From Saccharolobus solfataricus P2 (GTDB taxonomy: Archaea; Thermoproteota; Thermoprotei_A; Sulfolobales; Sulfolobaceae): a stretch of 64,000 bases of DNA. This document shows, in pieces, positions 21,012 through 59,148 of this stretch. Where the stretch lies: the NCBI RefSeq assembly GCF_000007005.1, contig NC_002754.1; one strand, 5' to 3'. Numbering within the stretch: the stretch's first letter is position 1; every line of letters starts with the position of its first letter. A program made the position numbers and the translations under genes. A model generated the notes under the pieces. That model did not search any database. It worked only from the letters and a program-made list of their open reading frames with translations, and was not told the DNA's origin.

Positions 21012-21440
21012 ATGTTATCGCAAAATAGGTTACTATTTTACATTGCTGGGGACGTATCGGGATATAACGTAGTTAAATACATTTACGGAGAGAAAAGTGA
21101 CTATTCGTTCTTCACAGCCCATTTCTTTTACAAGATATTATCTCCCATTAAAGTAATTTCATTATTACCAGATATCTGGTAAAGGATATGCAAAAGGCTG
21201 GCGAAGTTTATAAACAAGCGATTAAACGTAATGTGACAGTTTACATGAAAAATATATATTTGCTTATAGTCTAAAGGGCAACAACGTTTCCAAAATTACA
21301 TAAAGACCTTTCCGTATATTAGGAAGAGAGTTTGTCCTTTAAAGTCTCAGAAAGTATAACTCATTAAATTATATGGACAATTTTCTAAATGAGAAATTGT
21401 ACCAAATACCGGAGTTGGCAATATCGTTATTCTAACCGAA
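21012..21440 (+). pseudogene. csx1: Csx1 (CARF-HEPN RNase) N-terminal relic
   Basis: [11 protein letters not shown]...FFTAHF...LLPD matches the Sulfolobus Csx1 N-terminus; frameshift near 21180; MITE insertion; EIVPNTGVG resumes at ~21393; remainder absent. Confidence 0.7.
21254..21359 (+). mobile_element. ~106-bp MITE-like element (TTATACTT-terminus family, second subtype)
   Basis: Close copy at 34621-34726; termini resemble those of 6218 and 12085. Confidence 0.65.
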
Positions 21441-21828
21441 GGTCAAGGGTGAAACAAGAAAGCAAAATAAAAGCGACCTTAAACTTGAGTGTGATCAACA
21501 ATTTCCCGTTCATTTAAAATTTAGTTAAAATTCCTTAACGTCTCTTATTTTAAATTCTCCGATTAACAATAAAAACTTTCGAATAAAAATAAAATTACAA
21601 CGTCATTGCTTTATTGACAGATAGACCTTGTGATGAATTGAAACTAGATTTATACTTTAAATGATTTATACTGAATTAACAAAATTGTTGGCTATATTCC
21701 TAAACCTCATTGATCTCCTTGATAACTAGTTCTGATATGCAACGTGATTAAGGATTAGATCTCTTTAGAGTTGTTGAAATCCTTTGAGGAGTTTTAATTT
21801 ACTCTCAAGCATGAAATTAAAGAGTTAT

Positions 21829-23263
21829 CAGTGGTGTTTCACCAAATTATTTCATTTGAAAGATATAATATTAGTCCTTTCAAAAAGAGATTGATATAGA
21901 GAAAAACAATAAAATTATTATGAAACATAACATGTTAAAATAATTTGCAAAAAATATAGCGTACAATTCTAATAATAAGAGGAGAATTCTGAATTTTTCT
22001 CACGTGGTGAAAACGACGTGCATAGTCTCCTCTGAACACCGAGAAAGTTAGAGAAGCTTGACGAATGAATCGAAGGACAAACCCTTCTTACACGTGGACT
22101 TGAAGTTAAAGAGAAGATGATTCACTAGATTCCACGCAGAATCCAGAACCGTGTAATAGAGGAACAAGAAGATCTTATTACTCAACTTCCTAACATACCT
22201 TATCCTTGCCTTCCTAACCTTAAAACCCTCCTCAACTTGCCACCTCAACCTATAGAGTTCAGCCAGTTCATAGGGATCTCCCTCGAAGTTCGTTACGAAC
22301 ATGAAGTGCCTCGGCTTCCCCTTAACGTAAACCACATCGTAATAATAAAGCCCTTCAAATTTCAAGACCCTATACGCAACGTAAACCCTGTCCTTAACCT
22401 CGTATCTCTTCTCAACTAATGGAACGTTAGATAGTTCCTTGAATCCCTTCAAGTTCGACTTTCCTCTCACAATGGTCTTCACGGGCATTTCCTTGATGAC
22501 CCCTAGGTTCAAGAATCCGGCGTCAGCTACAACGTAATCTATTTCCATGTATTGGCTTACTTCCATCACGCTCCTGAGTAGGAACTGTGATGGACTGTCG
22601 CTTCTCAAATCTGCTATCTCCACTAGGAGGGGTAACCTTAAGGGATATACGAGGTCCAAGGATCTCATCTTTATTCCTTTTCTCTTCCAGTTGTAGAGTA
22701 GAAAGCCCTCTGCTTTTTCTTGTTCCTTTTCTCCCACGGTTAATCCGGTCTCATCTACACTACGTTGATCTCTCCCTTTACTTCTCTGTAGATTGGGTAG
22801 AACTTGAAGGTTCTCTGACCTTTACTAATTACTTTCTCGCCTTGTCTTACTACCTTCAAGTAGTATTTTCCTCTGTTTCCGGTTAGCAAGGATGGTGCTG
22901 CTTTCACTATTTCCAAGTCTAGATCTTGAGAGATAACGTTAATATTGTTTGTTGCTAAAGTTATAGCGAGGGACTTCAGCTCCGTTTTGGATACTTGTAT
23001 GGTTTGCATAACGGAGTTATGGAGTCCCTCGCTTTAACCTTTTCTTGTTCATCTCGTCCTTCCACCTACTCTCTCTCATTGATAATACTAGACAAATGGT
23101 ATTACTCTTTATATATAAACTCGTTTTCTGTTAGTTTCTTCAACAAATATGAAAATTTTTTGCTTCTTGTGTTGAAATAAGCCGATTTTTCTAACTCCGC
23201 TCTGATATTTTTCTCTTCCATAGAAATTGTATCATTTTGAGTAAAATTGGTGAAACACCACTG
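21829..23263 (-). mobile_element. 1435-bp IS (ISC1439-like) with frameshifted DDE transposase
   Basis: TIR CAGTGGTGTTTCACCAA, 9-bp TSD AAGAGTTAT; transposase split into ORFs 22755-23009 and 22048-22737. Confidence 0.85.
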
Positions 23264-23297
23264 AAGAGTTATTAAGTTGGGAAACCAATAAAATATT

Positions 23298-24631
23298 ATG
23301 ATTCTTGGCACTTTAGGCTCAGATAAGTCAGTTACTACAGTTGACGCTATAATGACTGAGATTTTCACAGGGATTAAGCTGGATGAAATAAGGATCTATA
23401 GGGAAGACGCTAATACCAAACCGGACTTCGTAACAAAAATGAAGGATGCGTAAAAATTCTCAATATAAACGCTGAAATTGTAGAAAGAGTCTTGGGAGAT
23501 GATATATTGGACTGGAAAAATAAAATATCAAATGAAAAAATAAATGTATTAGATATTACACCAGGAAGGAAATACATGGCTATTATAGGAAGCAACTACG
23601 TCCAAGCAGATGAAGTCAGATATGCATATCTAAAAGATGAACGTAAAGGGTATCACTAGTGCTTTCAGAAAGTTTATAGCTTTAGGCAAAGGATATACCA
23701 TTAGATCATAGTCTAAGAACTTTTCCAAAATACTAACGTTTTTGGTTATGTACCCCTCTCAGAAATAAAAGTTTATGATATAAGGAAAGGGAGGAAAGTT
23801 GAGTACGATCCCCCATTAACTAGAAAGTGTGAGGGGGATGAGTGCGTATCGTCACTAGATAGTGAGGGATTAACTGCACTTTACAACCTTCTTTCCATGC
23901 ACGGAAATGCAGATGTTAAATTCGGTAATGAAAGTGTATTTGATTTGGCAAGGGGCAGTAGTACAAATGACGAACTTTTAAACATTTGTATGATTAGGTC
24001 TGGGTTTAAAAAGTTTGAAGAAGAGAAAGAGATACAAAATACTGATGGTTTTTTCATAGCTGATACTAGCGTTTACATCAAATTGGGTAATAGACTAGGT
24101 TATCTTACAAAGGATAGGCTATTGGCTTCTAAAAGTGTGTACAACGAGTTGTCGGAGAGGACTAAATTAACGCAAATGGGAAAAGAAATAATAGTCTTCT
24201 ATTTGGGAATGTACTCTTACAGACATTTACATAAAAGTCCTCCGGTAAGTGAGTATAATAAGAGTGGCGATATTCCTTTAATTGAAGAAACTAGAAAGAT
24301 TAAGGAAAACATACCTGAAAAGGTTACGTTAATTACTGCTGATAGGCAACTGAAACAGAGAGCTAGAACGCTTGGTGTTAACGTCATTTTTCTTAATACC
24401 TTGAAGAGTGATTCGGGAAATATGAGTGAATTACTATTATGTGCTAGTAATAGGCGGGAGTATATGGAAAAATACGATTATGCAAGAAGGGACTTAACTA
24501 TAACTATTAATGATAAAGAAGTAATCAAAATTGAGTCTGATCCAACCAAGGAAGGGTTTTCAAGAATAAAGACGTTAAATAAGGAATTTAACTATGCGAA
24601 ATTAATAGAGAAACTTTATGAAATGATTTAG
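23298..24631 (+). pseudogene. CARF-PIN fusion ribonuclease, disrupted by a 1-bp deletion and an SM1 MITE
   Basis: MILGTLGSD and LDITPGRK CARF motifs; PIN acidic motifs IADTSV, GDIPLIE and TADRQL in ORF 23897-24631. Confidence 0.75.
23657..23735 (+). mobile_element. 79-bp MITE (SM1-type)
   Basis: Near-identical to 3837-3915; removing it plus one AC restores the CARF-PIN reading frame. Confidence 0.88.
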
Positions 24632-24774
24632 TTAGTAGTAAAAATGATGAATTTTTATAAAGATAAATACGTATATCATGCGTATAAGGAAAATGAGTTA
24701 TAAGAGTTGAAAAATAGGTGAGGTTAGATGAAGTATTGCGTTAGTTACTCTTTTATAAAGATTTTTTGCTTAAA

Positions 24775-25811
24775 TGCTTTGTGGATTGCTTCAGAATTGT
24801 ACAAAAAGTTTATAAATTATTCGTTTAAGTATTACCTATGGGAAAGAGTAAGTACAAGAGGGACTGGAGCAAGTACGACGAGAACGTCATAACTAGATAT
24901 AAGTTGATGTTCCCCTTCTACGTATTCGAACATTGGTGGGACTTATTAGCAGAGGAGAACAGGAACGCTAGGACAAAGTATAAAGCTCCGAAGGAGTTCA
25001 ACGAATTCCTAGCATTCTTACACATCTTCCTACCTTACAGAGCAATAGAAGGAGTATTGAGAGCCTTAGAACAATTGAAGATCATCCCCACAAGCCTCGA
25101 TTACTCAACAATATGGGAGAGAGTGAGGAACATGAACATAACCTTCCCCGAGGCAAGTGACGAACTTGAAGTAATTGCAGACGCTACCGGCATTGGCACA
25201 AACACGGGAGGACAATATATTGTTGCCAAGTGGGGGAAGACTAGGGATTCAAAATTCCTCAAGATCGAGATAGTAATGGACAATAACGAATTCAACGTGG
25301 TAAACGCTGAGGTCACTAGCAACGAGGTTGAAAGTGTAAAAACAGTTAAGGATCTTCAAGATAAGGGAAAGAAGTTTTATGGAGATAAGGCATATGACGC
25401 CAATGAGGTTTACAAGACCGGAGTTGAGGTTGTAGTTCCTCCCAAGAAGAACGCTTCTACTAAACGCCATCTTGCTAGACGTAAGGCTGTGCGGGAGTTT
25501 AGGAAGTTGGGTTATGATCGTTGGAGGGAGGAGAAGGGTTATGGCGTTAGGTGGCGGGTCGAGTCCTTGTTCTCTGTGAAGCGTACTTTTGGGGAATCGG
25601 TTAGACAAGTTTTGCTGGGCAAGTAGTTGAGGCTAAGCTCAAGTTCTGGGCTTACGCGTGGATGGTTCACTTGGCGAATTCTGTAGTCGGTAGGGCTCCG
25701 GGCATTAGGGTGTAAGCTTGAGAGGAACGTTGAAATAAATATTAATTACTGAAAAAATTAGTGTTATACAATATCGTTTTAATGAGACAAATTGAACGAA
25801 TCAACAAAGTA
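24775..25811 (+). mobile_element. Degenerate ISC1058-type IS (IS5 family)
   Basis: MGKSKYKRDWSKYDE transposase (24838-25626), frameshifted near the C-terminus (tail FWAYAWMVH in another frame); TIRs TGCTTTGTGGATTGCTTCA / TACTTTGTTGATTCGTTCA; GCTTAAA on both flanks. Confidence 0.85.
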
Positions 25812-26098
25812 GCTTAAAAAGGTGGATAAATGTTAGCTCGCTATTATTGAAAATCCGACATTGAAGTATATTGGCTTAAAGTATTACATACTAATTTTTA
25901 TGTGAAATATCGAAGATAGATACAATCGGAATGGTGTTTTCAACAATATTTCAAAGGGGTTAGGTAAGATCTAAGGGGCTATACTTTGAATTTGGTATTT
26001 TCAATAATTTTTTGCTCCACCTAGTTGCCCGAACATTGGGGTTACTGTGTCGATATAAACTATTGTAGCCCAAGGATATTTGTTAGTTAGAAAATTAA

Positions 26099-26701
26099 TT
26101 GTTAATCCTTTGCGTGAACCACAAGGTACAAATACCTGTAAAAGTAAAGTATAATATAATGGCTTACATAACTGATGACTTTGAGTTCTGGGCTTGGGTG
26201 AGTAGTGAGCCTAAAGTGATGAGGATGTTTAATGAATTGGAAAAAGCTTTCAAAAGATTTGAAGGTTCATTAATGTCTTTAGGTTATAATTACATATATC
26301 TAGATGTTTTTCCCTTTGATCAGAGAAGGATAACTGTTGTATTTGGTGAATACGAACCGCTACCCGTTGATGAGCTTGAGGGTAAGGAGGAAGAACGTGT
26401 CATGAAGGAACGTGAAAATTACTTTTCGATTACTTTTGATAATATTACTCCATCTCCGATAGAACAACCTACTTTGCTATCATATGAAGTGTATGCAATG
26501 TGGTGGCTCCATCACGAGGTTCCTGAGGAAAGTGATTTCGTTAATTTGGAAGGAATTGTTGAGAAGGGATTATTTCATTGCGTGAATGGAGACAAGCGAG
26601 AGGGTAAGTCTCAGACGAAATACCTCTTGGACTTAGGGGAATGCTATAATAATTTAATAAAAGTAGTGAATAAAAGGGACTTTAAATTCCCCTTAATGTA
26701 A
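26099..26701 (+). CDS. Hypothetical acidic protein (candidate immunity/antitoxin); start may be the ATG at 26159
   Basis: Open 200-codon frame with typical codon usage, 51 bp upstream of a co-oriented basic ORF; no family recognised. Confidence 0.6.
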   Translation: MLILCVNHKVQIPVKVKYNIMAYITDDFEFWAWVSSEPKVMRMFNELEKAFKRFEGSLMSLGYNYIYLDVFPFDQRRITVVFGEYEPLPVDELEGKEEERVMKERENYFSITFDNITPSPIEQPTLLSYEVYAMWWLHHEVPEESDFVNLEGIVEKGLFHCVNGDKREGKSQTKYLLDLGECYNNLIKVVNKRDFKFPLM

Positions 26702-26752
26702 AAGGGATATAATTTTCCAATAGATTTAAAATATGTTTCTTTTTAATCTTTA

Positions 26753-27172
26753 ATGATGTCTACTAGCGGATTTTATCAACGATCTAGGAGGGCAATAATT
26801 TATGAAACTGATTCTCTTTTCAGATATACGACTGAGGCTGAGTTAAAATTCGTAATCGAGAAAGGAGTAATTATGTCTTACAATCCAAAGGGTACATATT
26901 TGACAAATTTGTTTACTGATGACCCAAATGTTGCTGTGAAAATGTTAGCCCTATCTAAGCTTCCTCGATATAGAATTGGTCCCATTTCCATGAGTAAAAA
27001 GTTATTTTCTAAAGTTAAGTATGTAGGCATTGTGACGCCAAAAGGAAAAAGTAGGGGAGGAGCAAAGGAATACGTTTTTACTGATCCCATAATTATTGAT
27101 GTAGAGAACCTTTACGTTTACGACTTTAAAGATAGAAGAACATATACAATTCGTTTACCCTCTATTCATTGA
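26753..27172 (+). CDS. Hypothetical basic protein, putative ADP-ribosyltransferase/NAD-glycohydrolase-fold toxin
   Basis: Motif series LFRYT...GTYLT...LAL..LP.YRI...V.P....GGAKEY resembles ART/TNT-like polymorphic toxin domains (judged by eye). Confidence 0.5.
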   Translation: MMSTSGFYQRSRRAIIYETDSLFRYTTEAELKFVIEKGVIMSYNPKGTYLTNLFTDDPNVAVKMLALSKLPRYRIGPISMSKKLFSKVKYVGIVTPKGKSRGGAKEYVFTDPIIIDVENLYVYDFKDRRTYTIRLPSIH

Positions 27173-27222
27173 GACATTATTTGAAACAGTAAGAGGTTAA
27201 ATAGTTAAAATACGTAAGTTAA

Positions 27223-27839
27223 GGGCGATTCACGGATCCACTGCGATTTCAATTTGTTTCTCTAAAAATAGATAAGAATAATTGATTCTACATTTTCGGT
27301 AATACTAATAAGGGACGAGCGTTAGGTAATATCATGGACCTGTTAACTGCGAATGAGATAACCCTCTACGGCATTCAGCTAAAGGAGCTCATAGAGGGAC
27401 CCGGACAGAGCTTAACCCTCACACTCGCCCCCAAGATATTATCCGATGACGCATTATTAAACAAATCGGTCCAAGAGATCGAGAAGATGGCCTTGGAGGA
27501 GGCTGAGAAGAGGAGTCCCAACTACCGGAGGGGTAAGGAGGTGAAGAGGAAGGGTTACGCGAGGTACAGGTTCTTGAAGGGGTTTAAGATCATGTTAGAA
27601 GGGAGAGAAGTCATTTACAAGTTAGAGTGGATCTCGGTGGAGTTGCCCGTACTTTACGGGATTAAGGGAAGGGTGAAGACTCAAGTGGAGGAGACTTTGC
27701 TGAGGAAGGAGAGGAAGGTCTTCGCGACCTTGATGTTGGTCTATTCTGTGCTGGGAGGTAAGTTGAACGCAAAGCTCTGGATGCCTCAGATCGAAGTGAG
27801 TGGCAATTTCAAGTATGTAATAGTTGATGGGAAATGCGT
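27223..27839 (+). mobile_element. 5' fragment of an IS256-like (ISC1250/ISC1332-type) element
   Basis: Left end GGGCGATTCA; transposase ORF from 27334 truncated just after KYVIVDGK. Confidence 0.6.
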
Positions 27840-27919
27840 TAGTATTTTGGAAAAGTTCTTAAGACTATGATCTAGTGGTATATCCTTTGCCTAAAGCTAT
27901 AAACTTTCTGAAAGCACTA
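27840..27919 (-). mobile_element. 80-bp MITE (SM1-type), inverted
   Basis: Reverse complement of the 3837 copy with one extra base; GT on both flanks. Confidence 0.88.
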
Positions 27920-27921
27920 GT

Positions 27922-28360
27922 GTAGGTAGAAGAAGTACGGTCCGATTGACTCCATTATCCCTTCCTTATATTCGCCAAGGAATTTGATTAGTTCTTCTAT
28001 TCCCTCGTTGTCGTACTTGAATTCCCTCACCTCGTTGACCTCTACTTCCCTTTTCTCTTGCGTTATTACAAGTTCAGCTTTCGCTACCGTCAACTTGTCC
28101 CTTGAAACGTCTATTGCGAAACCCCTTGTCTTAATCTCACTTTCCATGATAGAATATTACTCGTGTATGCGAGATATTCTTTACTATCATAATACCACGT
28201 TTTTCTCGCATAATATTAACTACCTTCAGCCCCTAGAAAAATTTACTTGCGCACTCCTACTCGGGGTTTTGTCCCCTCTTGTTAGATCGTTCTAGGGGCT
28301 TCACAGCCAGCCTATTATCTGGGGTTTTTATCCCCATGTTGCGACTGGGCTTATGTTGTT
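27922..28360 (-). mobile_element. 5' fragment of an IS110-family element (ISC1190-like)
   Basis: ORF 27917-28147 has FAIDVSRD and IMES, the first two residues of the DEDD RuvC-like domain; truncated at the MITE. Confidence 0.7.
28228..28350 (-). ncRNA. Candidate IS110 bridge/seek RNA region
   Basis: Two tandem stem-loops, each enclosing a GGGG-N6/7-CCCC hairpin, about 80-200 nt upstream of the IS110 ATG. Confidence 0.35.
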
Positions 28361-28536
28361 TTTCTCCTTCCTTGCTTATTTGTTTTTCTCTTGTAATACT
28401 TGTTTTTACTAGTTCTCTAGTTTTGCGTGAATTCCCCGTAGAGATGCGAAGGAGAAATTAATATTTCCCAATACAAAATATAGAAGAACACTCGAATAAG
28501 TCTGAATAGTTAAGGATATGTATATTAAAAGAAAAC

Positions 28537-29971
28537 CAGTGGTGTTTCACCAAATTATTTCATATGAAAGATATAATATTAGCCCTTTCAAAAAGAGATT
28601 GATATAGAGAAAAACAATAAAATTATTATGAAACATAACATGTTAAGGTAATTTGCAAAAAATATAGCGTACAATTCTAATAATAAGAGGAGAATTCTGA
28701 ATTTTTCTCACGTGGTGAAAACGACGTGCATAGTCTCCTCTGAACACCGAGAAAGTTAGAGAAGCTTGACGAATGAATCGAAGGACAAACCCTTCTTACA
28801 CGTGGACTTGAAGTTAAAGAGAAGATGATTCACTAGATTCCACGCAGAATCCAGAACCGTGTAATAGAGGAACAAGAAGATCTTATTACTCAACTTCCTA
28901 ACATACCTTATCCTTGCCTTCCTAACCTTGAAACCCTCCTCAACCTGCCACCTCAACCTATAGAGTTCAGCCAGTTCATAGGGATCTCCCTCGAAGTTCG
29001 TCACGAACATAAAGTGCCTCGGCTTTCCCTTAACGTAAACCACATCGTAATAATAAAGCCCTTCAAATTTCAAGACCCTATACGCAACGTAAACCCTGTC
29101 CTTAACCTCGTATCTCTTCTCAACTAATGGAACGTTAGATAGTTCCTTGAATCCCTTCAAGTTCGACTTTCCTCTCACAATGGTCTTCACGGGCATTTCC
29201 TTGATGACCCCTAGGTTCAAGAATCCGGCGTCAGCTACAACGTAATCTATTTCCATGTATTGGCTTACTTCCATCACGCTCCTGAGTAGGAACTGTGATG
29301 GACTGTCGCTTCTCAAATCTGCTATCTCCACTAGGAGGGGTAACCTTAAGGGATATACGAGGTCCAAGGATCTCATCTTTATTCCTTTTCTCTTCCAGTT
29401 GTAGAGTAGAAAGCCCTCTGCTTTTTCTTGTTCCTTTTCTCCCACGGTTAATCCGGTCTCATCTACACTACGTTGATCTCTCCCTTTACTTCTCTGTAGA
29501 TTGGGTAGAACTTGAAGGTTCTCTGACCTTTACTAATTACTTTCTCGCCTTGTCTTACTACCTTCAAGTAGTATTTTCCTCTGTTTCCGGTTAGCAAGGA
29601 TGGTGCTGCTTTCACTATTTCCAAGTCTAGATCTTGAGAGATAACGTTAATATTGTTTGTTGCTAAAGTTATAGCGAGGGACTTCAGCTCCGTTTTGGAT
29701 ACTTGTATGGTTTGCATAACGGAGTTATGGAGTCCCTCGCTTTAACCTTTTCTTGTTCATCTCGTCCTTCCACCTACTCTCTCTCATTGATAATACTAGA
29801 CAAATGGTATTACTCTTTATATATAAACTCGTTTTCTGTTAGTTTCTTCAACAAATATGAAAATTTTTTGCTTCTTGTGTTGAAATAAGCCGATTTTTCT
29901 AACTCCGCTCTGATATTTTTCTCTTCCATAGAAATTGTATCATTTTGAGTAAAATTGGTGAAACACCACTG
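28537..29971 (-). mobile_element. 1435-bp IS (ISC1439-like), second copy
   Basis: Same TIRs, 9-bp TSD AAAGAAAAC, same frameshift as 21829-23263. Confidence 0.85.
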
Positions 29972-30091
29972 AAAGAAAACTTTATTTAACTTTTGGATTT
30001 GCCATTATATTGAAAGACCTAAACGCATTTTTAAATCCATTGATACTTAGACTATCAAGATTTTTTAAACCCTTTGATATTCTAAGTATCA

Positions 30092-31321
30092 ATGGAAGAA
30101 AACATTTGGTGGAGAGGGAAGGACTATATAGAGGAAGATGAAGATATTAAGAAGTGGAACTCTGCTAAATTTAAGTGGATTCCAAAGGAAATAAACAAGA
30201 TCTCTCTTCAACCCTTCTCCTTGAACTTTATCGTAGGCCCTAGACAAGTTGGAAAGACCACTCTGATAAAACTCCTAATTAAGAAGCTACTTGAGTCGAA
30301 TCACAACCCCTTATCAATATTCTACTGTAGTTGCGACCTCGTGTCCGATTACGAAGAACTATTGAAAAGGACAAGGGACTATCTAAAAATTAGGAAGCAG
30401 GAGGGCATTAAATCCTCATTCATTTTCCTTGATGAGGTCACTTTTGTTAAGGAGTGGTATAGAGCAGTAAAGCACTTAATTGATACCGGTGAACTAACAA
30501 GCGATGTAGTTACGGTTTCAGGTTCAAGTTCATTAACGATTCTAAAGCAGAAAGAGAGTTTTCCCGGTAGGAGGGGAAATGGAACTGATGTAATCTTGTA
30601 CCCTCTCAGCTTCTCTGGTTATATTAACGTAATTAATCCGAAAATTGAAGTCAGACCAGGTTGGTATAGTGAAATTGAAGAACTCTTTGAGAGTTATCTA
30701 AAGGTAGGAGGACTACCCCCGTCGATTAACGGTCTGTCTCCACTGAAAACATATACAGAGTGGATCATTTATGAGATAAATAGGGTAGGAAGAGATGAGA
30801 TGCTCGCTAAGCAGATACTTTCCGCAGTCCTCTCAACGACACCTAGTAAGGTGAGCTATAACTCAATTGCCAAAGAGATAGGAGTAAATCACAGAACTGT
30901 TGCGGAGTATATTAAGCTCTTTAATGATATGTTTTTGACCTTAACACTTCACTTCATAGATGTTAATACCGGTTACTATAACTACAGAAAGCAGATTAAG
31001 ATACACTTTGTAGACCCGCTGTTTTATGACGTAATGTCTACATGGACTGGAGTCAAGAGACCAGATGATCCAATAATCGTAGAGGGGATAGTTGCATCGC
31101 ATCTCTCGAGAATTTACAGCATAGGTTATACTGAGGTGGGGAAGGAGGAGATAGACGTCGTAACACTGCCAGAAGTTATCGGCTACGAAGTAAAATACAG
31201 AGAGAGGACAAAACAGGTAAAAGTTATTGCTGGAAAGATGAAGAAAGTGATCACATTATCAAAGCACGGAGAAAACGACACATTCCCGGTTCATTTATTC
31301 CTCGCCGAGTTAAATATATGA
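30092..31321 (+). CDS. AAA+ ATPase (AAA_14 / DUF4143 type)
   Basis: GPRQVGKT Walker A, FLDEV Walker B, KIHFVDP motif and C-terminal EIDVV...EVK. Confidence 0.85.
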   Translation: MEENIWWRGKDYIEEDEDIKKWNSAKFKWIPKEINKISLQPFSLNFIVGPRQVGKTTLIKLLIKKLLESNHNPLSIFYCSCDLVSDYEELLKRTRDYLKIRKQEGIKSSFIFLDEVTFVKEWYRAVKHLIDTGELTSDVVTVSGSSSLTILKQKESFPGRRGNGTDVILYPLSFSGYINVINPKIEVRPGWYSEIEELFESYLKVGGLPPSINGLSPLKTYTEWIIYEINRVGRDEMLAKQILSAVLSTTPSKVSYNSIAKEIGVNHRTVAEYIKLFNDMFLTLTLHFIDVNTGYYNYRKQIKIHFVDPLFYDVMSTWTGVKRPDDPIIVEGIVASHLSRIYSIGYTEVGKEEIDVVTLPEVIGYEVKYRERTKQVKVIAGKMKKVITLSKHGENDTFPVHLFLAELNI

Positions 31322-31423
31322 AAATCTTTTAAGAAATTTTCATTTACTTCGACTCTTTTTTAGTAATATTGACTTTTGTACAAATAATCAATTGTCAGAA
31401 AATCCGTCATTTGGAAATCGACT

Positions 31424-33034
31424 TCAGCAGTGACTAGTAATAAACTCCACAGCCTCTTTTATCGAGTCAACATAGTTTTCTATTTTTGCAAATCCGTGTC
31501 CCTCATCTTTGTATATCTTATATTTCACTTCTCTACCCAACTTTCTAAGTTCTTCAACTACTTGCAAAGTTTCCTCAGCTGGACATCTTGGGTCATTTTC
31601 ACCAGCTAAGAGAAGCAATGAAGTTTTTATCCTATCAATAAAGAATATAGGTGATCTATCCCTCAATAAATTTTCATCATTACCAACCTTTATTTCGTCA
31701 TATAGTTGAAGTATTTCCCTTTCAAGCTTCTTTTCGGTAAACCAATTAACAAAAGGTACTACAGCCACAGCCGAACACCAAAGGTCCGAGAACTTAGTAG
31801 TAGCCATCATGGTCAAATAGCCACCATAACTTGCACCAGTTATTGCAATCTTTTTAACTCCTAAGACCTTCACTGAATTTATAACATCTAACAACTCACC
31901 TCCTCCTGGGTCTTTATCGTTCAAATGGTTAAACCTCCTTCCATAACCTATAGATCCTCTGTAATTGGGACAAATAACCTTAAATCCTCTCTCCATAAAG
32001 AACTGAATTTCTGGGTTGAATGAGTTTACGCATTCCCAATCTGGACCTCCGTGAATATAAACTATACCCTTATCCTCACCACCTTTTTCATAGAGTAAGG
32101 CGTAAATCCTCAACCCATTGGAGTCGTAAGAGACAACCTTAGGTTTTATGAAATTCCCTTTAGCATCGTTCATTGAGTCAGTTAACCTCTCTACCTTTTT
32201 CCCATATCTGTATAGGTCTGCTGATCTATCATGTTTAGAGTTTACAAAATAAATATAATCTCCATCAACCTTTAAGGAGTAGGTAAAGCCTTCATTAACT
32301 ATCTCTTTTTCGTGAATTAAGACAAAGTTGCCGTGTCTATCCTCAACATAAGCGATAGAACCCTTATATGGAATAGCCTCAAAGATTTCGTAATCGCTTT
32401 CCCTTATTTTTCTGATCTCTCCCTTTAAAATATTAAACTCATAAACCTTAGATAAATCCTCGTGATTTGAGAGAAAGATGAATGATGAAGGAGAAGTAAA
32501 ACAATTCTCATTTGCAAGCTCTTGCTCTGAGTTTGGGATATTAATTACATTAATTTCATTACCACTGAGATCCATCACGTGAATGTTATTATCATAAATC
32601 CCAGTCGAGTAAACTATGTATTTGCCATTAAAACAGTAATTGTTTACCGGTCCTTCACCCTTGCTTAGCTTAATATATTTTCCTTCATTGTAGAGGTAAA
32701 GATGTAATGTCTTTTTATCATAGTTTGAGATTACTAGAATCCCTTCGTTTGTCTCGCGAGGAGATAAATTATCAAACTCATTATCAATAATTTTCTCTAT
32801 CTTCCCGTTATCGTAAAGGTAAATTTTCCTAATTTCACTACCGTTAGGGTCTACTGTGATAAACATTTTGTTTCTATTTATCCAGTCTACTTCTTTGGCA
32901 TATCCTTCGAGTTGGACTTTTTCCTTGTTGACGTAAAGGACGGGTTTTTCATCTCTTATAATTGTTGCTATTTTTCCGTTATATACGTCGTAATCGAGTA
33001 CAGGTTTTATCTTAAATAAATCTTCATATTTCAT
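31424..33034 (-). CDS. S9 family acylaminoacyl/prolyl oligopeptidase
   Basis: N-terminal beta-propeller-like region, HGGP, GASYGG nucleophile, GENDPRC and EGHGF catalytic triad motifs. Confidence 0.9.
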   Translation of the reverse strand: MKYEDLFKIKPVLDYDVYNGKIATIIRDEKPVLYVNKEKVQLEGYAKEVDWINRNKMFITVDPNGSEIRKIYLYDNGKIEKIIDNEFDNLSPRETNEGILVISNYDKKTLHLYLYNEGKYIKLSKGEGPVNNYCFNGKYIVYSTGIYDNNIHVMDLSGNEINVINIPNSEQELANENCFTSPSSFIFLSNHEDLSKVYEFNILKGEIRKIRESDYEIFEAIPYKGSIAYVEDRHGNFVLIHEKEIVNEGFTYSLKVDGDYIYFVNSKHDRSADLYRYGKKVERLTDSMNDAKGNFIKPKVVSYDSNGLRIYALLYEKGGEDKGIVYIHGGPDWECVNSFNPEIQFFMERGFKVICPNYRGSIGYGRRFNHLNDKDPGGGELLDVINSVKVLGVKKIAITGASYGGYLTMMATTKFSDLWCSAVAVVPFVNWFTEKKLEREILQLYDEIKVGNDENLLRDRSPIFFIDRIKTSLLLLAGENDPRCPAEETLQVVEELRKLGREVKYKIYKDEGHGFAKIENYVDSIKEAVEFITSHC

Positions 33035-33387
33035 AAATAATAAAAGAGGAGTAGAAATAAAAAGTTATTCAGATAGCAGGCCTCATATCACTAATCGCTC
33101 CCATTCGAGTTCATCAACAGAATATGGTATAAATTCCCCATATTAAATTATTATAGTAATTTTTATAATTATTGAAAAGAAGTTAAAGGATTAGTTCTAA
33201 CCTAAGATATTGAAAATGAATGAATTAATGAAGCAATAATATATATTTTGTATTAACAATTGTCATTTTCCTTATCGCGTTTACTGGGCACTACACACTT
33301 AGCTTCTGACAAATCTAAGTTTGCAACGGTGGGAAGAAAAAGACTATATTTCTTTGAGTCTCATTATTGTATGAAAATTTTTGACGA

Positions 33388-34615
33388 GAGAGTGTCCGGA
33401 ATGTAAAAAATTGAATTTTTATTGGCAAGAATAAATTGGTTTTTAGCATTATCTTGGATTAAATTGGAGTAACACTTAAGTTATGGGAGTAGAGGGTAGT
33501 ACCATGGCAAGAACATTAAGACACATACCAAACCTGATGTACTACCCTCTTCCCCCAATAGAGGATATGCCGTGGAGGGAAAAATGGTTAACGGAGATCA
33601 AGCCCGTGCTGGACGCCATGGATTTGGAGAGGGTTCTGGGCGAGGGCGCGCTGGTTTACTTGAAGTTGTTAATCGTCATGGTGCTCTACTCTTGCTCCTA
33701 TAGGGACGCGGTGAAAATGGTTAACGTGAACGTGGTCGTGGCCTGGTTCGTGGGGAGGAAGGTGGGGAAGAGCACGCTGCACGACTTCGTGGGCAGGTTG
33801 TACGGGGTGAGGAAGAAGTTGTTGGAGATTTCCTTCAAGCTTGAGGAGAAGTGCCTACCCAGTTACCTCCCTGCGAGCGCGCATCTCGTGGACTTCATGG
33901 CGTGGCTAGTGGACTCCTTCCTACTGGACTTACCTCCTGGGAAGAGGAGCGTGGAGACCTTTCGGGAGAAGGCGGAGCTGGAGAGGAGGGAAGGTAACCT
34001 GGAGAGGGCCAGGAAGCTGCTCTCCCTGGGGAGAACCAAGAGGAGGTTCGAGGGAAGGTGGACCAAGAAGAGAGGGGTCTCGCACTACGGGCTCAAGGCC
34101 ATAGCCGTGATCTCCGTCTCCCTCTTCGTGAGGTCCATCACGGTGAAGCCGGCCAACTTCTCGGACAAGAGGTTCAAGTCACCGCTCAAGGGGATTAAGA
34201 TCGCGGACAGGGGATTCTCTCCCTCCCCGACACAGCTCATAGCGCGGGAGAAGCCCTTCACTACCCTGAGGGCCCACGTGGAGTTCTTCGGCACCTACCT
34301 GAACGCGTTCTGGAGGCCCTACGGGACCACGACCTGGAGGAACGACGTCTTCCTTCACGTCCTGGGAGTGATCTACAACATCAAGATGTTCCTCGCGATC
34401 CAACGGAGGACTCCTCCAGGACGTAGAGCCGTTCAGCTCTGAGACGCGCCTCCTCGCGATCAAGCAACGCTATGCGCGATAGGTAAATCCTCTCGTCTTG
34501 ATATTTTTCCATTATAAAGTTTTTCTCGGTGATCCAGGTCCTACCCTTCTGGCAATATTAATATTTATCATTCTGTTTATCTATTCGTTCAGATAATTAC
34601 ATTCCGGACACTCTC
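33388..34615 (+). mobile_element. 1228-bp IS (ISC1234-like, IS5 family) with intact transposase at 33483-34442
   Basis: 19-bp perfect TIR GAGAGTGTCCGGAATGTAA, 4-bp TSD ACGA; LVDS, IADRGF and HVEF motifs. Confidence 0.8.
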
Positions 34616-34620
34616 ACGAA

Positions 34621-34726
34621 TTATACTTGCTTATAGTCTGAAGGGCAACAACATTTCTAAAATTACACAAGACCTTTCTGTATGATAGGAATAGAGTCTT
34701 GCCCTTTAAAGTCTCAGAAAGTATAA
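34621..34726 (+). mobile_element. 106-bp MITE-like element (TTATACTT termini)
   Basis: TIRs TTATACTTGCTTATAGTCTGAAGGGC / TTATACTTTCTGAGACTTTAAAGGGC; copy at 21254. Confidence 0.7.
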
Positions 34727-34796
34727 TAGAAGCTTTATGATTTATCTAAAACTTTTAACCACTGGCATAAGATAATACAGAATACCAAAGTGCACA

Positions 34797-34952
34797 CTTT
34801 TAATTCCTTTAGGAATTTATCATCATAGTTCAGCGGGACTGGCCTATCTTCATTAAATCCTTTCCAATTCCTTATATGGAGTTATTCATTTTTAAATTCA
34901 CATGCCGAATACTATAAAAAGTAGCTACTTTCAATCCATTTTAGGATTCATC
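34797..34952 (-). CRISPR. Degenerate mini-CRISPR: 3 repeat-like units, 2 spacers (38 and 40 nt)
   Basis: Units at 34797-34821, 34860-34887 and 34928-34952; the last is 22/25 identical to the large-array repeat; normal CRISPR spacing. Confidence 0.7.
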
Positions 34953-34996
34953 GGTGTGTCTTTATACTTCTGCCTTTCTTTTTTCCCGTTATTGTT
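34953..34996 (-). promoter_or_regulatory. Leader remnant of the mini-CRISPR
   Basis: GTGTCTTTATACTTCTGCCTTTCTTTT resembles GTGTTTTTATACTTCCTATTTTTCTTTT next to the first repeat of the large array. Confidence 0.55.
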
Positions 34997-35159
34997 GGGC
35001 GATTCAGGTCTCCTTTGCTAATTATAATTTGTAAACAATACGTTGTAAAAATGTTAATATTAATAATCATGCATCTTTGCCAGTTAATCATCTTTATTTA
35101 GTTAATTTCGTAGTAATCTTTAAAATAAAGTGAATTCGCAACGGATAACTGAATCGCCC
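34997..35159 (+). mobile_element. 163-bp MITE
   Basis: Perfect 11-bp TIR GGGCGATTCAG; related copies at 46816, 48365-49639 and ~62108-62264. Confidence 0.75.
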
Positions 35160-35787
35160 TCTGGATATAAAGGATGTATCATGTGACACCCATTACCAAT
35201 ATCTTAAGGATAATCGAATTTGCATTACGATATATTAAAAAAGTAGTTTCATAGCGCTTACTCTCATTTATTACCCTTAGTCTTCAATTAGACTGTTTCG
35301 TATGGGCAATTATACAAAAATTCTCTCATCTTAAGATTTTCTATGAATTTTCATAATATTGAAAGGATTTAGAGTGTGATGAAAAGGGATAGTTTGCTTG
35401 TTCTAGCTCGTGTTTCTCATATTCATTTAACTAACAAGTCTTTATGAGGATTCAGTTAAGCTTATAAGCTACGAACGGGCTAATAATAATGTGCCCCAAA
35501 ATGAATTGATATAAACGAGCGACTTTGTATCTATATTCAATATTATCTACCGCCCAATTTGTCCTACAATGAGTATTTTTTAGTCTTCTTTCACGGGATA
35601 AATTACGTCAGATAATGGATTAGAAAAATATTTAAATATCCAGCCAGACCATTCTATACTGGTGGATAAAAATGACTATAAGTACAAGATCGAGTTTGGT
35701 ATTAGATATAATTTTTCTGAAGCTAAATAAAGGTAAAGAGGAGAAGAAGAAGGTTAATCTACAATAAGGAACTGAGGGGTGAACCCT

Positions 35788-50518: not shown

Positions 50519-50519
<1 letters not shown>
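49656..50519 (-). CDS. cas6: Cas6
   Basis: GIGRSRGIGFG glycine loop; Sso1437-type sequence. Confidence 0.93.
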
Positions 50520-52309
<1,790 letters not shown>

Positions 52310-57152: not shown

Positions 57153-59148
57153 CTTTCAATTCTATAAGAGATTATCTGAGGATATACTTTAATCGGATTG
57201 TGTTAGGTGGAGAGATGTTCTTTCAATTCTATAAGAGATTATCCCATCTACCACACCGCGGACACTGGTATAAACATGCACCGGCTTTCAATTCTATAAG
57301 AGATTATCTCAGTCTTATTGTCGAGGAGTAGTGGTAGGAGTGATACCTTTCAATTCTATAAGAGATTATCGGAAGAGACAAGACTCTACAGTACAATATG
57401 CCCCAGATGCTTTCAATTCTATAAGAGATTATCAACCGGAAGTACGAACTATGTTGCTGAGATTGTGGTCTATGTCTTTCAATTCTATAAGAGATTATCT
57501 TTGTGGTACTTGTAGTTGTGATGCTGACGTTCCACTACTCTTTCAATTCTATAAGAGATTATCTCAAATCAACAAGTTACAGTAACCAACGGTACTTCAA
57601 ACCCCTTTCAATTCTATAAGAGATTATCTATGTTGTTGTTTGTTGAGTTGTGGTCTGCTGTGTAGTTGCTTTCAATTCTATAAGAGATTATCATCCAGAC
57701 GAAGTGGGGGCAATCATGCAGCCCCCCTCACTTTCAATTCTATAAGAGATTATCAAAGATAATGGATAATAACTTAACATTACAGAATTTAATGCTTTCA
57801 ATTCTATAAGAGATTATCTAAACTCATGTAGCGTTAGTTGGAGCGGATCTGCACAAGTACTTTCAATTCTATAAGAGATTATCCCAGTGTTTTACTTAAC
57901 ATCAGTACAAGGATCAAAACCCTTTCAATTCTATAAGAGATTATCAAGAGTTCGATCGGATTAAAGAGGAGATTGAGCAAAACTTTCAATTCTATAAGAG
58001 ATTATCAGTGACTCAATACCGGTCACAATATCTTCAGGTGCTCCCATTCTTTCAATTCTATAAGAGATTATCCGTCCCCATCGAATACGTAAGAGTCTGG
58101 AGGGGAATTTACTTTCAATTCTATAAGAGATTATCTAAAGGTTACGTTAGAACTAGAAAAGAATGGAAATCTGAACTTTCAATTCTATAAGAGATTATCT
58201 GGAGTTTTCAGATATTTTGTAAAGTACGTTCAGTTTCTTTCAATTCTATAAGAGATTATCAATAGGCTATGGTGTGTGGATGGACCTGTATCGTAAATAC
58301 TTTCAATTCTATAAGAGATTATCCACGCAAAAGGATAAACAATATGGTGCGATTCGAATGGACTTTCAATTCTATAAGAGATTATCACAAACAGTGTGTG
58401 TTACATTATCCTTCGATTACAACGAACTTTCAATTCTATAAGAGATTATCCTTCTGTTCTGAAATTATAAAGGACATGCTGATAAAATTTCTTTCAATTC
58501 TATAAGAGATTATCCTAACTGAAGAAGACCCAATTTATATTGCAGGATTTGTCTTTCAATTCTATAAGAGATTATCTGCAGAACCATTAGCTGGTACAGT
58601 AACTGTTTGCCAACTTTCAATTCTATAAGAGATTATCACCATAGTCCCTGATTTCGGTATTCTTTACCCTGTAACCCCTCTTTCAATTCTATAAGAGATT
58701 ATCGCTTATCTCTCTCATGCGCCATTTCTTCTTTCCTTCTTTCCTTTCAATTCTATAAGAGATTATCTATATCCCAAAAAATCTCAGACATTAGAGAGCA
58801 TTTTTGTCTTTCAATTCTATAAGAGATTATCAATAGATCCAGAAAATGAATATGTCAAATTAGCTGACATTTCTTTCAATTCTATAAGAGATTATCTTTA
58901 TTTTCTTGCGATATTTCATTACCGAGACTTTTGCCTCTTTCAATTCTATAAGAGATTATCCAACCACAAGAAGAAACCACTACCCAAGAAATGCAGGGAC
59001 TTTCAATTCTATAAGAGATTATCTTTGACTCCTGGGCTTAACGCACCTTCTCTGGCCTCGACTTTCAATTCTATAAGAGATTATCTTAGCCCAGATGAAG
59101 CAACACAAGAGGCTAGTAAGGTTGCTTTCAATTCTATAAGAGATTATC
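57153..59148 (-). CRISPR. CRISPR array, 32 repeats / 31 spacers (hand count); transcribed repeat GATAATCTCTTATAGAATTGAAAG
   Basis: 24-bp invariant repeat CTTTCAATTCTATAAGAGATTATC; leader at the right. Confidence 0.99.

Follow-up and report, generated by a model that had tools for sequence, protein, structure and literature searches.

Two adjacent plus-strand genes in a 64,000-nucleotide stretch of the Saccharolobus solfataricus P2 genome (NC_002754.1; this whole stretch is hereafter the window) appear to form a toxin-immunity or toxin-antitoxin (TA) module built from two unannotated protein families, with a predicted enzyme toxin that is common to polymorphic toxins. The upstream gene (26159..26701) encodes a 180-amino-acid (aa) putative antitoxin or immunity protein, here called the partner, and the toxin-like gene downstream (26753..27172) encodes a 139-aa protein, the two being co-oriented with a gap of 51 bp (26702-26752). 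An earlier reading of the window made from the letters alone (the sequence-only reading) had taken these open reading frames (ORFs) for orphans encoding a nicotinamide adenine dinucleotide (NAD)-targeting toxin of the ADP-ribosyltransferase (ART) or TNT type and its inhibitor. Its spacing and its hand counts of charges proved exact, with 33 D/E versus 20 K/R in the partner (net -13, isoelectric point (pI) 4.7, counted from the ATG at 26159) and 23 K/R versus 13 D/E in the 139-aa protein (net +10, pI 9.8). We hold it fairly probable that the pair is a stand-alone toxin-antitoxin (toxin-immunity) cassette, with an inhibitor as partner and a toxin that is probably of ART type. The observations that carry this reading are the adjacency of the two genes, the co-divergence of their families, a conserved residue set in the toxin-like family and the presence of the same domain in bacterial Rhs toxins.

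Both proteins are labelled "hypothetical protein" in every public record, and neither matches Pfam, NCBIfam, PADLOC or PDB sequences. An exhaustive phmmer search with the 139-aa protein against 1.84 billion cluster representatives returned 22 matches, 21 of them real relatives; the other, P0010 (3501 aa), was rejected as a repeat-driven false positive. The full alignment of the toxin-like family was too divergent for locus scans, for which a tighter sub-alignment was used instead, and these scans added relatives from Caldarchaeales, Desulfurococcales, Nitrososphaeria, other Thermoproteota metagenome-assembled genomes (MAGs), Acidianus copahuensis and 23 metagenome contigs. Members were also found in Sulfurisphaera tokodaii and several Saccharolobus shibatae strains. 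The idea of orphan genes therefore falls, the 180-aa protein having relatives too, and so does a restriction to Sulfolobales, since the family is spread patchily over thermophilic archaea and some bacteria, with two copies each in two MAGs. Scans of all members against PHROGs and PADLOC were empty.

Evaluating 33 distinct members, we found R24, Y25, E30, G47, T48 and L65 invariant where present, and S42, T51, A61, R74, G76, P96, G102, G103 and E106 nearly invariant. Position by position, R24 is kept in 29/29 members, T48 in 32/32, T51 in 31/32, E106 in 27/30, G102 in 27/31 and G99 in 18/30, and position 49 is Tyr in 27/32 and aromatic in 31/32. This conservation reads as the pattern of an enzyme active site, and the series of R, Y and E residues that had been picked out in the window protein is more than chance. 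The window copy keeps all of the family-conserved R24, Y25, E30, S42, T48, Y49, T51, R74, G102, G103 and E106. Each motif quoted by the sequence-only reading is likewise there, with the correction that five residues rather than four lie between P96 and G102 (VTPKGKSRGGAKEY). An unusual member, P0013 (L013 5001-5741; 246 aa), carries a C-terminal extension of ~120 aa, and its gene adjoins an OB-fold/RPA-like gene in an acetyl-CoA-pathway (CdhC) organism; the extension was considered as a fused partner domain, which the partner profile did not confirm.

Linkage of the two genes in other genomes had been set beforehand as a test of the pairing, and we found them adjacent in nearly all archaeal loci. 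A first profile search of the genome contigs with the partner alignment gave no match. A hidden Markov model (HMM) seeded from close relatives of the 180-aa protein and run on all ORFs of the fetched loci matched only ORFs directly adjoining a toxin-family gene, with E values at first detection of 5e-15 to 5e-4 (1000 ORFs). Such pairs occur in the window, S. shibatae, S. tokodaii, A. copahuensis and several MAGs, the partner being upstream and co-oriented everywhere but in A. copahuensis. There (Candidatus Acidianus copahuensis, L019 4983-5834) the order is inverted, with the toxin-family gene first and the partner downstream. Once the partner HMM existed, a further 23 metagenome loci were fetched, and in 21 of them the partner ORF lies immediately upstream; several of these loci duplicate earlier ones, L026, L029, L032, L039 and L044 being new. 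The gap between the genes ranges from a 4-bp overlap (L017, L018) up to 164 bp. Members that are more alike in one family tend to be more alike in the other (correlation of pairwise identities, r 0.66, permutation p 0.001), with the partner family diverging faster (mean identity 34% versus 48% for the toxin family), and the charges are opposite in 8/11 pairs. We read these two small, adjacent and co-oriented genes as being inherited as a unit.

Their genomic behaviour is TA-like as well, given the patchy spread, the multiple copies, the TA genes among their neighbours (MazE, PaREP1 and HEPN/nucleotidyltransferase genes at one locus) and the split toxin ORFs. L026 and three independent assemblies (L034-36) have a split toxin ORF beside an intact partner, L046/47 show splits in both genes, and L021/38/40 retain just a 66-aa toxin stub without a partner. 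A partner-family protein of Acidianus sulfidivorans JP7 (P0004, DFR86_00105; 53% identity to the window partner), known here from its protein record alone, may be a solitary antitoxin.

The same domain is found as a warhead in bacteria. Searching by tblastn with the bacterial member P0021, we obtained matches on nine Leptospira plasmids (lowest E 2e-8), where they fall on approximately the last 100 aa of coding sequences annotated as RHS repeat-associated core domain or SpvB/TcaC-N-terminal-domain proteins. In an Rhs protein of 487 aa on the L. weilii plasmid pDO6, the match spans residues 380-478, and a 118-aa ORF lies 4 bp downstream. The family HMM, which is almost wholly archaeal, gives this tip 65.9 bits over model positions 7-107, and the tip retains R24, Y25, E30, T48, T51, A61, L65, R74, P96, G102 and E106. 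It is common for immunity ORFs to be unrelated between systems that carry one toxin domain. No relationship links the archaeal partner family with the Leptospira downstream ORF or with the ORFs on either side of L007, a bacterial member that stands alone, and these bacterial ORFs are also unrelated to each other. The standard arrangement in polymorphic toxins is a variable C-terminal tip on the Rhs protein with an immunity gene behind it (PMC9503650; bioRxiv 10.64898/2026.01.26.701734). Because the same domain tips Rhs polymorphic toxins, the 139-aa and not the 180-aa protein would be the toxic component, and the partner is then its expected neutraliser. A toxin with a neutralising partner is, as a reading of the sequences, well supported, and the toxin-type domain with a dedicated acidic partner that had been proposed gains from the near-universal adjacency in archaea, the co-divergence and the Rhs tip together. 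The pDO6 region (L050, Leptospira weilii plasmid pDO6, 33059-39325) holds three successive polymorphic-toxin cassettes, two with Rhs tips and one with a HINT-domain toxin, each then followed by a small ORF; the middle tip is the member of the toxin-like family.

For the chemistry of the toxin, the ART superfamily offers the frame. Its fold is a split six-stranded sheet, beta4-5-2 / beta1-3-6 (bioRxiv 10.64898/2026.01.26.701734), and its clades are defined by a triad on strands 1, 2 and 5, which reads H-Y-[EDQ], R-S-E or H-H-h (PMC9503650). An AlphaFold model of the 139-aa protein, run with a 24-sequence alignment, reached a predicted local distance difference test score (pLDDT) of 86.6 and a predicted template modelling score (pTM) of 0.81, versus a pLDDT of only 33 for a single-sequence run. 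The predicted elements are strand 16-26 (LFRY), helix 28-37, strand 48-55 (GTYLT), helix 58-65, strand 73-79 (YRIG), a short helix 82-85, and strands 88-93, 105-109 (with K-E106-Y first), 119-124 and 129-134. Their order, b1-a1-b2-a2-b3-a3-b4-b5-b6-b7, is as an order compatible with an ART. Strands 16-26, 48-55 and 105-109 of the model place R24, Y49 and E106 on strands 1, 2 and 5, and R24, T48/Y49/T51 and E106 would thereby stand at the ART triad positions.

Structural and profile neighbours of the family, none of them significant, lead into the same superfamily. The PDB neighbour of top probability in Foldseek was the yeast tRNA 2'-phosphotransferase Tpt1 (7yw4), of the ART superfamily, at a probability of 0.54 and a non-significant TM of 0.40/0.45, and the viral library returned unnamed jumbo-phage proteins (probability up to 0.95, TM ~0.4). 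One of these, Bacillus phage G gp336, weakly matches the PARP catalytic domain (E 0.021) and has no sequence relative in the PDB. Aligning the family with gp336 (E 0.32) and with E. coli KptA (E 0.14), hhalign gave the same top local alignment, neither significant, in which "LFRYT..E..FI..G.I" falls on the strand-1/helix-1 "hhHGT...I..G.I" of the ART lobe (KptA residues 102-123).

These neighbours bear on another account, in which the two proteins would work together without being toxic, for instance as a Tpt1/KptA-like enzyme for NAD-dependent RNA-end processing, or one that modifies small molecules, with a regulatory or substrate-presenting subunit. The rank of the tRNA 2'-phosphotransferase, the placement of family strand 1 on KptA strand 1 and a partner that is bigger than typical antitoxins and has no DNA-binding domain all speak for it. 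We nonetheless regard it as decidedly improbable, since the same domain is a variable Rhs toxin tip with a small ORF after each, the genes lie patchily and in multiple copies amid TA genes and insertion sequence (IS) elements with toxin ORFs repeatedly disrupted, and the family lacks the N-terminal RNA-binding lobe and the H/R tetrad of Tpt1. Compared with Tpt1/KptA, which belong to the H-H-h clade and align at strand 1 and helix 1, the family has Arg for the strand-1 His, and in the genomes it behaves like a mobile toxin module rather than a housekeeping enzyme.

The sole Pfam family matched by more than one member is TNT (PF14021), hit by P0005, P0021 and P0024 (E 0.016-0.12) over "V-x-P-x-x-G-Q-P-G-G-x-x-E", with the conserved Glu (E106) at model position 68 in 3/3. 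In TNT numbering (PMC6398120), the spacing of G99/G102/E106 equals that of G815/G818/Q822, with Glu replacing Gln, a spacing match to which no significance is attached, and the 57 residues from Y49 to E106 equal those from Y765 to Q822. Positions 62-65, within the predicted helix 58-65, set beside the TNT motif QRXL (Arg780), carry Q in 15/33 members, K/R in 14/33, any residue and L in 33/33, and read VKML in the window. We consider it quite likely that the family is a divergent minimal ART-superfamily domain, TNT-like in its C-terminal two thirds; by the current definition of the TNT family, it falls outside. The case for ART/TNT chemistry is only suggestive, plausible and internally consistent as it is.

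Several results weigh against the reading of the pair as a cassette with an ART-type toxin. Foldseek with the model against the PDB gave no match at E <= 1e-3 (best E 0.33), profile and consensus searches against Pfam and PDB sequences were empty or returned noise, no Pfam, NCBIfam, PADLOC or PHROG family was matched above threshold, and the similarity to ART families is non-significant. The best TNT score was 16.1 bits (E 0.016) versus a Pfam gathering threshold of 27, with 23-26 residues per match. TNT was matched by 3 of ~34 members, ten further members gave no TNT match, and nor did the window protein or the family consensus. Where TNT has the essential Arg757 of its DRXG motif (PMC6398120), residues 40-43 at equivalent spacing read I-[YFM]-S-x, the family's conserved arginines being R24 (strand 1) and R74 (strand 3), and QRXL is only partly kept. 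On the side of the partner, no DNA-binding domain (HTH/RHH/AbrB) and no known immunity domain was detected in its family members. Moreover, the toxin gene may have a promoter of its own, and its ratio of non-synonymous to synonymous substitution rates (dN/dS) of 0.64 between the window and S. shibatae suggests relaxed constraint. What stands of the ART/TNT proposal, then, is the conserved R, Y and E on predicted strands 1, 2 and 5 and the weak signals into the superfamily, none of which is significant; the DRXG motif is absent. A sub-profile of the bacterial members run against the PDB drew homeobox and capsid noise and was set aside.

These empty searches, along with a top TM of ~0.4, would also suit a genuine TA cassette whose toxin is no ART or NAD enzyme but a small nuclease or some other activity in a new alpha/beta fold. 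A basic pI (9-10) suits a nucleic-acid-directed toxin, the charge of the window protein would fit a nucleic-acid target too, and the Rhs-tip and linkage evidence is silent on chemistry. We rate this alternative as unlikely yet worth keeping in view, as all of the independent weak signals (TNT, Tpt1, the PARP-like phage neighbour and KptA strand 1) lead to the ART superfamily, the top structure matches include no nuclease fold, and strands 1, 2 and 5 carry R / T-Y-T / G-rich loop-E in the way typical of ARTs.

Under the preferred reading, a TA cassette with an ART-type toxin, the basic 139-aa protein would be an intracellular enzyme toxin of an unannotated domain family that also serves as an Rhs warhead in bacteria, most likely with a minimal ADP-ribosyltransferase-superfamily fold. 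A predicted NAD+ site would combine R24 from strand 1 with the strand-2 residues T48/Y49/T51 and with E106, which follows a glycine-rich loop and opens strand 5; R74 on strand 3 may contribute to this site. The toxin would act either as an NAD(P)+ hydrolase, like TNT, or by transferring ADP-ribose to a macromolecule, and the acidic 180-aa partner would bind it stoichiometrically and so block it. What we infer is an ART fold, the use of NAD+ as substrate, direct binding as the mode of inhibition and a role in defence or addiction (plasmid or virus). Given its few conserved polar residues, the partner resembles an inhibitor rather than an enzyme, and the lack of a detected DNA-binding domain makes an immunity-protein-like inhibitor a better fit than a classical type II antitoxin. 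At E <= 1, no Pfam family, immunity proteins of the IFT / Imm63 type included, was matched recurrently among 11 partner-family members.

DarT and MbcT are ART-superfamily toxins of TA systems. The RES NAD+ phosphorylases are others (PMC9503650). With ART toxins of type II TA systems and polymorphic toxins (R-S-E and H-Y-[EDQ] clades), the window pair shares a two-gene cassette of toxin and neutraliser, a predicted triad of Arg / Thr-Tyr-Thr / Glu on strands 1, 2 and 5 and NAD+ as the presumed substrate. It differs in a partner that is neither a macrodomain nor of Xre type, in the lack of a significant sequence or structure match, and in what would be a hybrid triad, with a strand-1 R as in R-S-E and a strand-2 aromatic Y as in H-Y-E. 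TNT / Ntox40 (PF14021) with IFT / Imm63 is likewise a small toxin domain of heat-stable type with a dedicated neutralising protein, and TNT is classed as an ART-superfamily toxin domain (PMC9503650). Common features are the glycine-rich loop leading to a catalytic-type Q/E, and the aromatic 57 residues earlier, with a Q-[KR]-x-L-like helix motif, kept only in part, at matching distance, whereas the family has Glu for Gln, R24 and R74 instead of the DRXG Arg, an extra N-terminal strand-helix unit, an archaeal host and a partner unrelated to Pfam immunity families. The Rhs cassettes of Leptospira carry the same domain family at their tips, each then followed by a small ORF; the 139-aa protein, by contrast, is the toxin domain alone, without an Rhs, PAAR or LXG delivery part or a signal peptide, and its partner, encoded on the upstream side, has no relation to the ORF that follows the Leptospira tip. 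In Tne5/Tni5, an ART-fold Rhs tip acts as a pure NAD(P)+ glycohydrolase, with a loop of the immunity protein blocking the cleft (bioRxiv 10.64898/2026.01.26.701734). Tne5 depends on Lys, not Arg, and the family is set beside it by description only.

Turning to the locus, the conserved two-gene cassette block (26074..27225, +) forms a single 1153-bp blastn segment at 95.8% identity with S. shibatae CP077713 (L001 7322-8473). We took the ATG at 26159 as the partner start because an N-terminal DDF-x-FW motif is kept in homologues; the alternative TTG start at 26099 would give 200 aa. The spacer, 98% identical between the window and S. shibatae, contains an A/T-rich TATA-like box, ATTTAAAATAT, at ~26724-26734 and ~24 nt 5' of the toxin-like ATG, which we infer could serve as an internal promoter and give a leaderless toxin transcript. 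At synonymous sites, the cassette has a dS of 0.07-0.08 (window 26159-27172 versus L001 7407-8420), roughly one third of the 0.21 found for the neighbouring cas2/cas6 in the same two genomes, and this, with small counts, hints at a more recent exchange of the cassette.

That the cassette in the window genome is a decaying, functionless remnant would accord with the toxin dN/dS, which compares with 0.08-0.13 in the neighbouring cas genes, with the IS-riddled surroundings and with relatives that are often pseudogenised. This account is highly unlikely in our estimation: both ORFs are intact with all conserved residues kept, the spacer is conserved, the partner dN/dS is 0.25, and the substitutions are few (14 non-synonymous and 6 synonymous), the toxin and partner ratios both being based on small counts.

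The placement of the pair inside a CRISPR (clustered regularly interspaced short palindromic repeat) island holds. An array of 48 repeats spans ~14.5-20.5 kb of the window, adaptation and type I-A genes lie upstream of the pair, and a Cmr module lies downstream. The position between IS remnants was also correct. ORFs for DDE transposases (DDE_Tnp_1) lie at 22048-22737, 24838-25626 and 28756-29445, and two direct DDE_Tnp_1 IS copies of 1437 bp, 99.4% identical, flank the pair region at 21829-23265 and 28537-29973. In S. shibatae, the cassette block lies between the conserved array end, which it directly abuts, and the Cmr module; in the window, it is cut off from the array by an IS-rich insertion of ~5 kb (21084-26073) and from the Cmr module by another of ~8.5 kb (27226-35745). 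The IS flanks are therefore secondary.

A CRISPR-Cas accessory module that works with the array next to it or with the type III (Cmr) system might be expected where both Saccharolobus genomes hold the pair between array end and Cmr module and where a distant relative, L039, sits ~800 bp from an array end. We find this reading very improbable, because no array or cas homologue was found at the other ~20 distinct loci (L039 excepted), no CARF or SAVED sensor domain was matched in either protein, and the bacterial relatives are Rhs tips. With the pair lying away from cas genes and arrays at the other loci, L039 apart, a functional tie to CRISPR is unsupported. L039 itself (1-322, 1114-2115; toxin ~39% identical), from a metagenome, has the pair ~800 bp past the degenerate end of an array with a 24-nt repeat, GTAACAACGAAAAGAAACTAAAAC, and so gives a second instance of the pair near an array.

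A bolder version of the TA reading would make the pair an archaeal abortive-infection or back-up immunity system, in which the partner restrains an NAD-depleting ART toxin and frees it on perturbation by a virus or plasmid. The pair would then be functionally coupled to CRISPR-Cas, as its array-end position in two distant lineages might indicate (e.g., as a locus guard or when CRISPR fails). This full scenario we deem improbable, and an abortive-infection or CRISPR-linked role is speculation. Relatives of the archaeal branch were found neither by tblastn of the window protein against plasmid and phage collections nor in an IMG/VR scan, and these searches thus give no evidence for a viral or plasmid origin of that branch.

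Both families are absent from Pfam, NCBIfam and PADLOC, and the pair would be one more candidate for non-CRISPR defence or addiction in Sulfolobales, where such systems are thinly charted. Since archaeal cassettes and bacterial Rhs warheads have the domain in common, a single experiment would yield a toxin-domain annotation that serves both archaea and bacteria. If the ART/NADase reading is true, the system would be among very few NAD-targeting toxin systems in hyperthermophilic archaea, its toxin a compact, heat-stable member of the enzyme class, and the partner would found a new immunity or antitoxin family. If the abortive-infection reading is true, it would be the first NADase-type abortive-infection or TA system shown in Thermoproteota.

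Beyond the pair, the two IS copies (21829-23265/28537-29973) enclose a 5.3-kb segment in a composite-transposon-like layout, which contains a CARF-PIN fragment, a further transposase fragment, the pair and an ORF at 27334-27870. The CARF-PIN fragment is a 244-aa ORF (23897-24631) within the 21084-26073 insertion that matches PADLOC CARF_m3--CARF_PIN (E 2.8e-69) over profile positions 170-389 of 392; lying beside an IS, this type III CRISPR ancillary nuclease is truncated at its N terminus and has lost its sensor part. The window also has another type III-like gene block, on the minus strand (49.6-56.6 kb), and a perfect 42-nt tandem duplication (50701-50786) lies within the minus-strand ORF 50519-51598. 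A second CRISPR array, with a different repeat (CTTTCAATTCTATAAGAGATTATC), runs from 58614-58767 on to ~59129.

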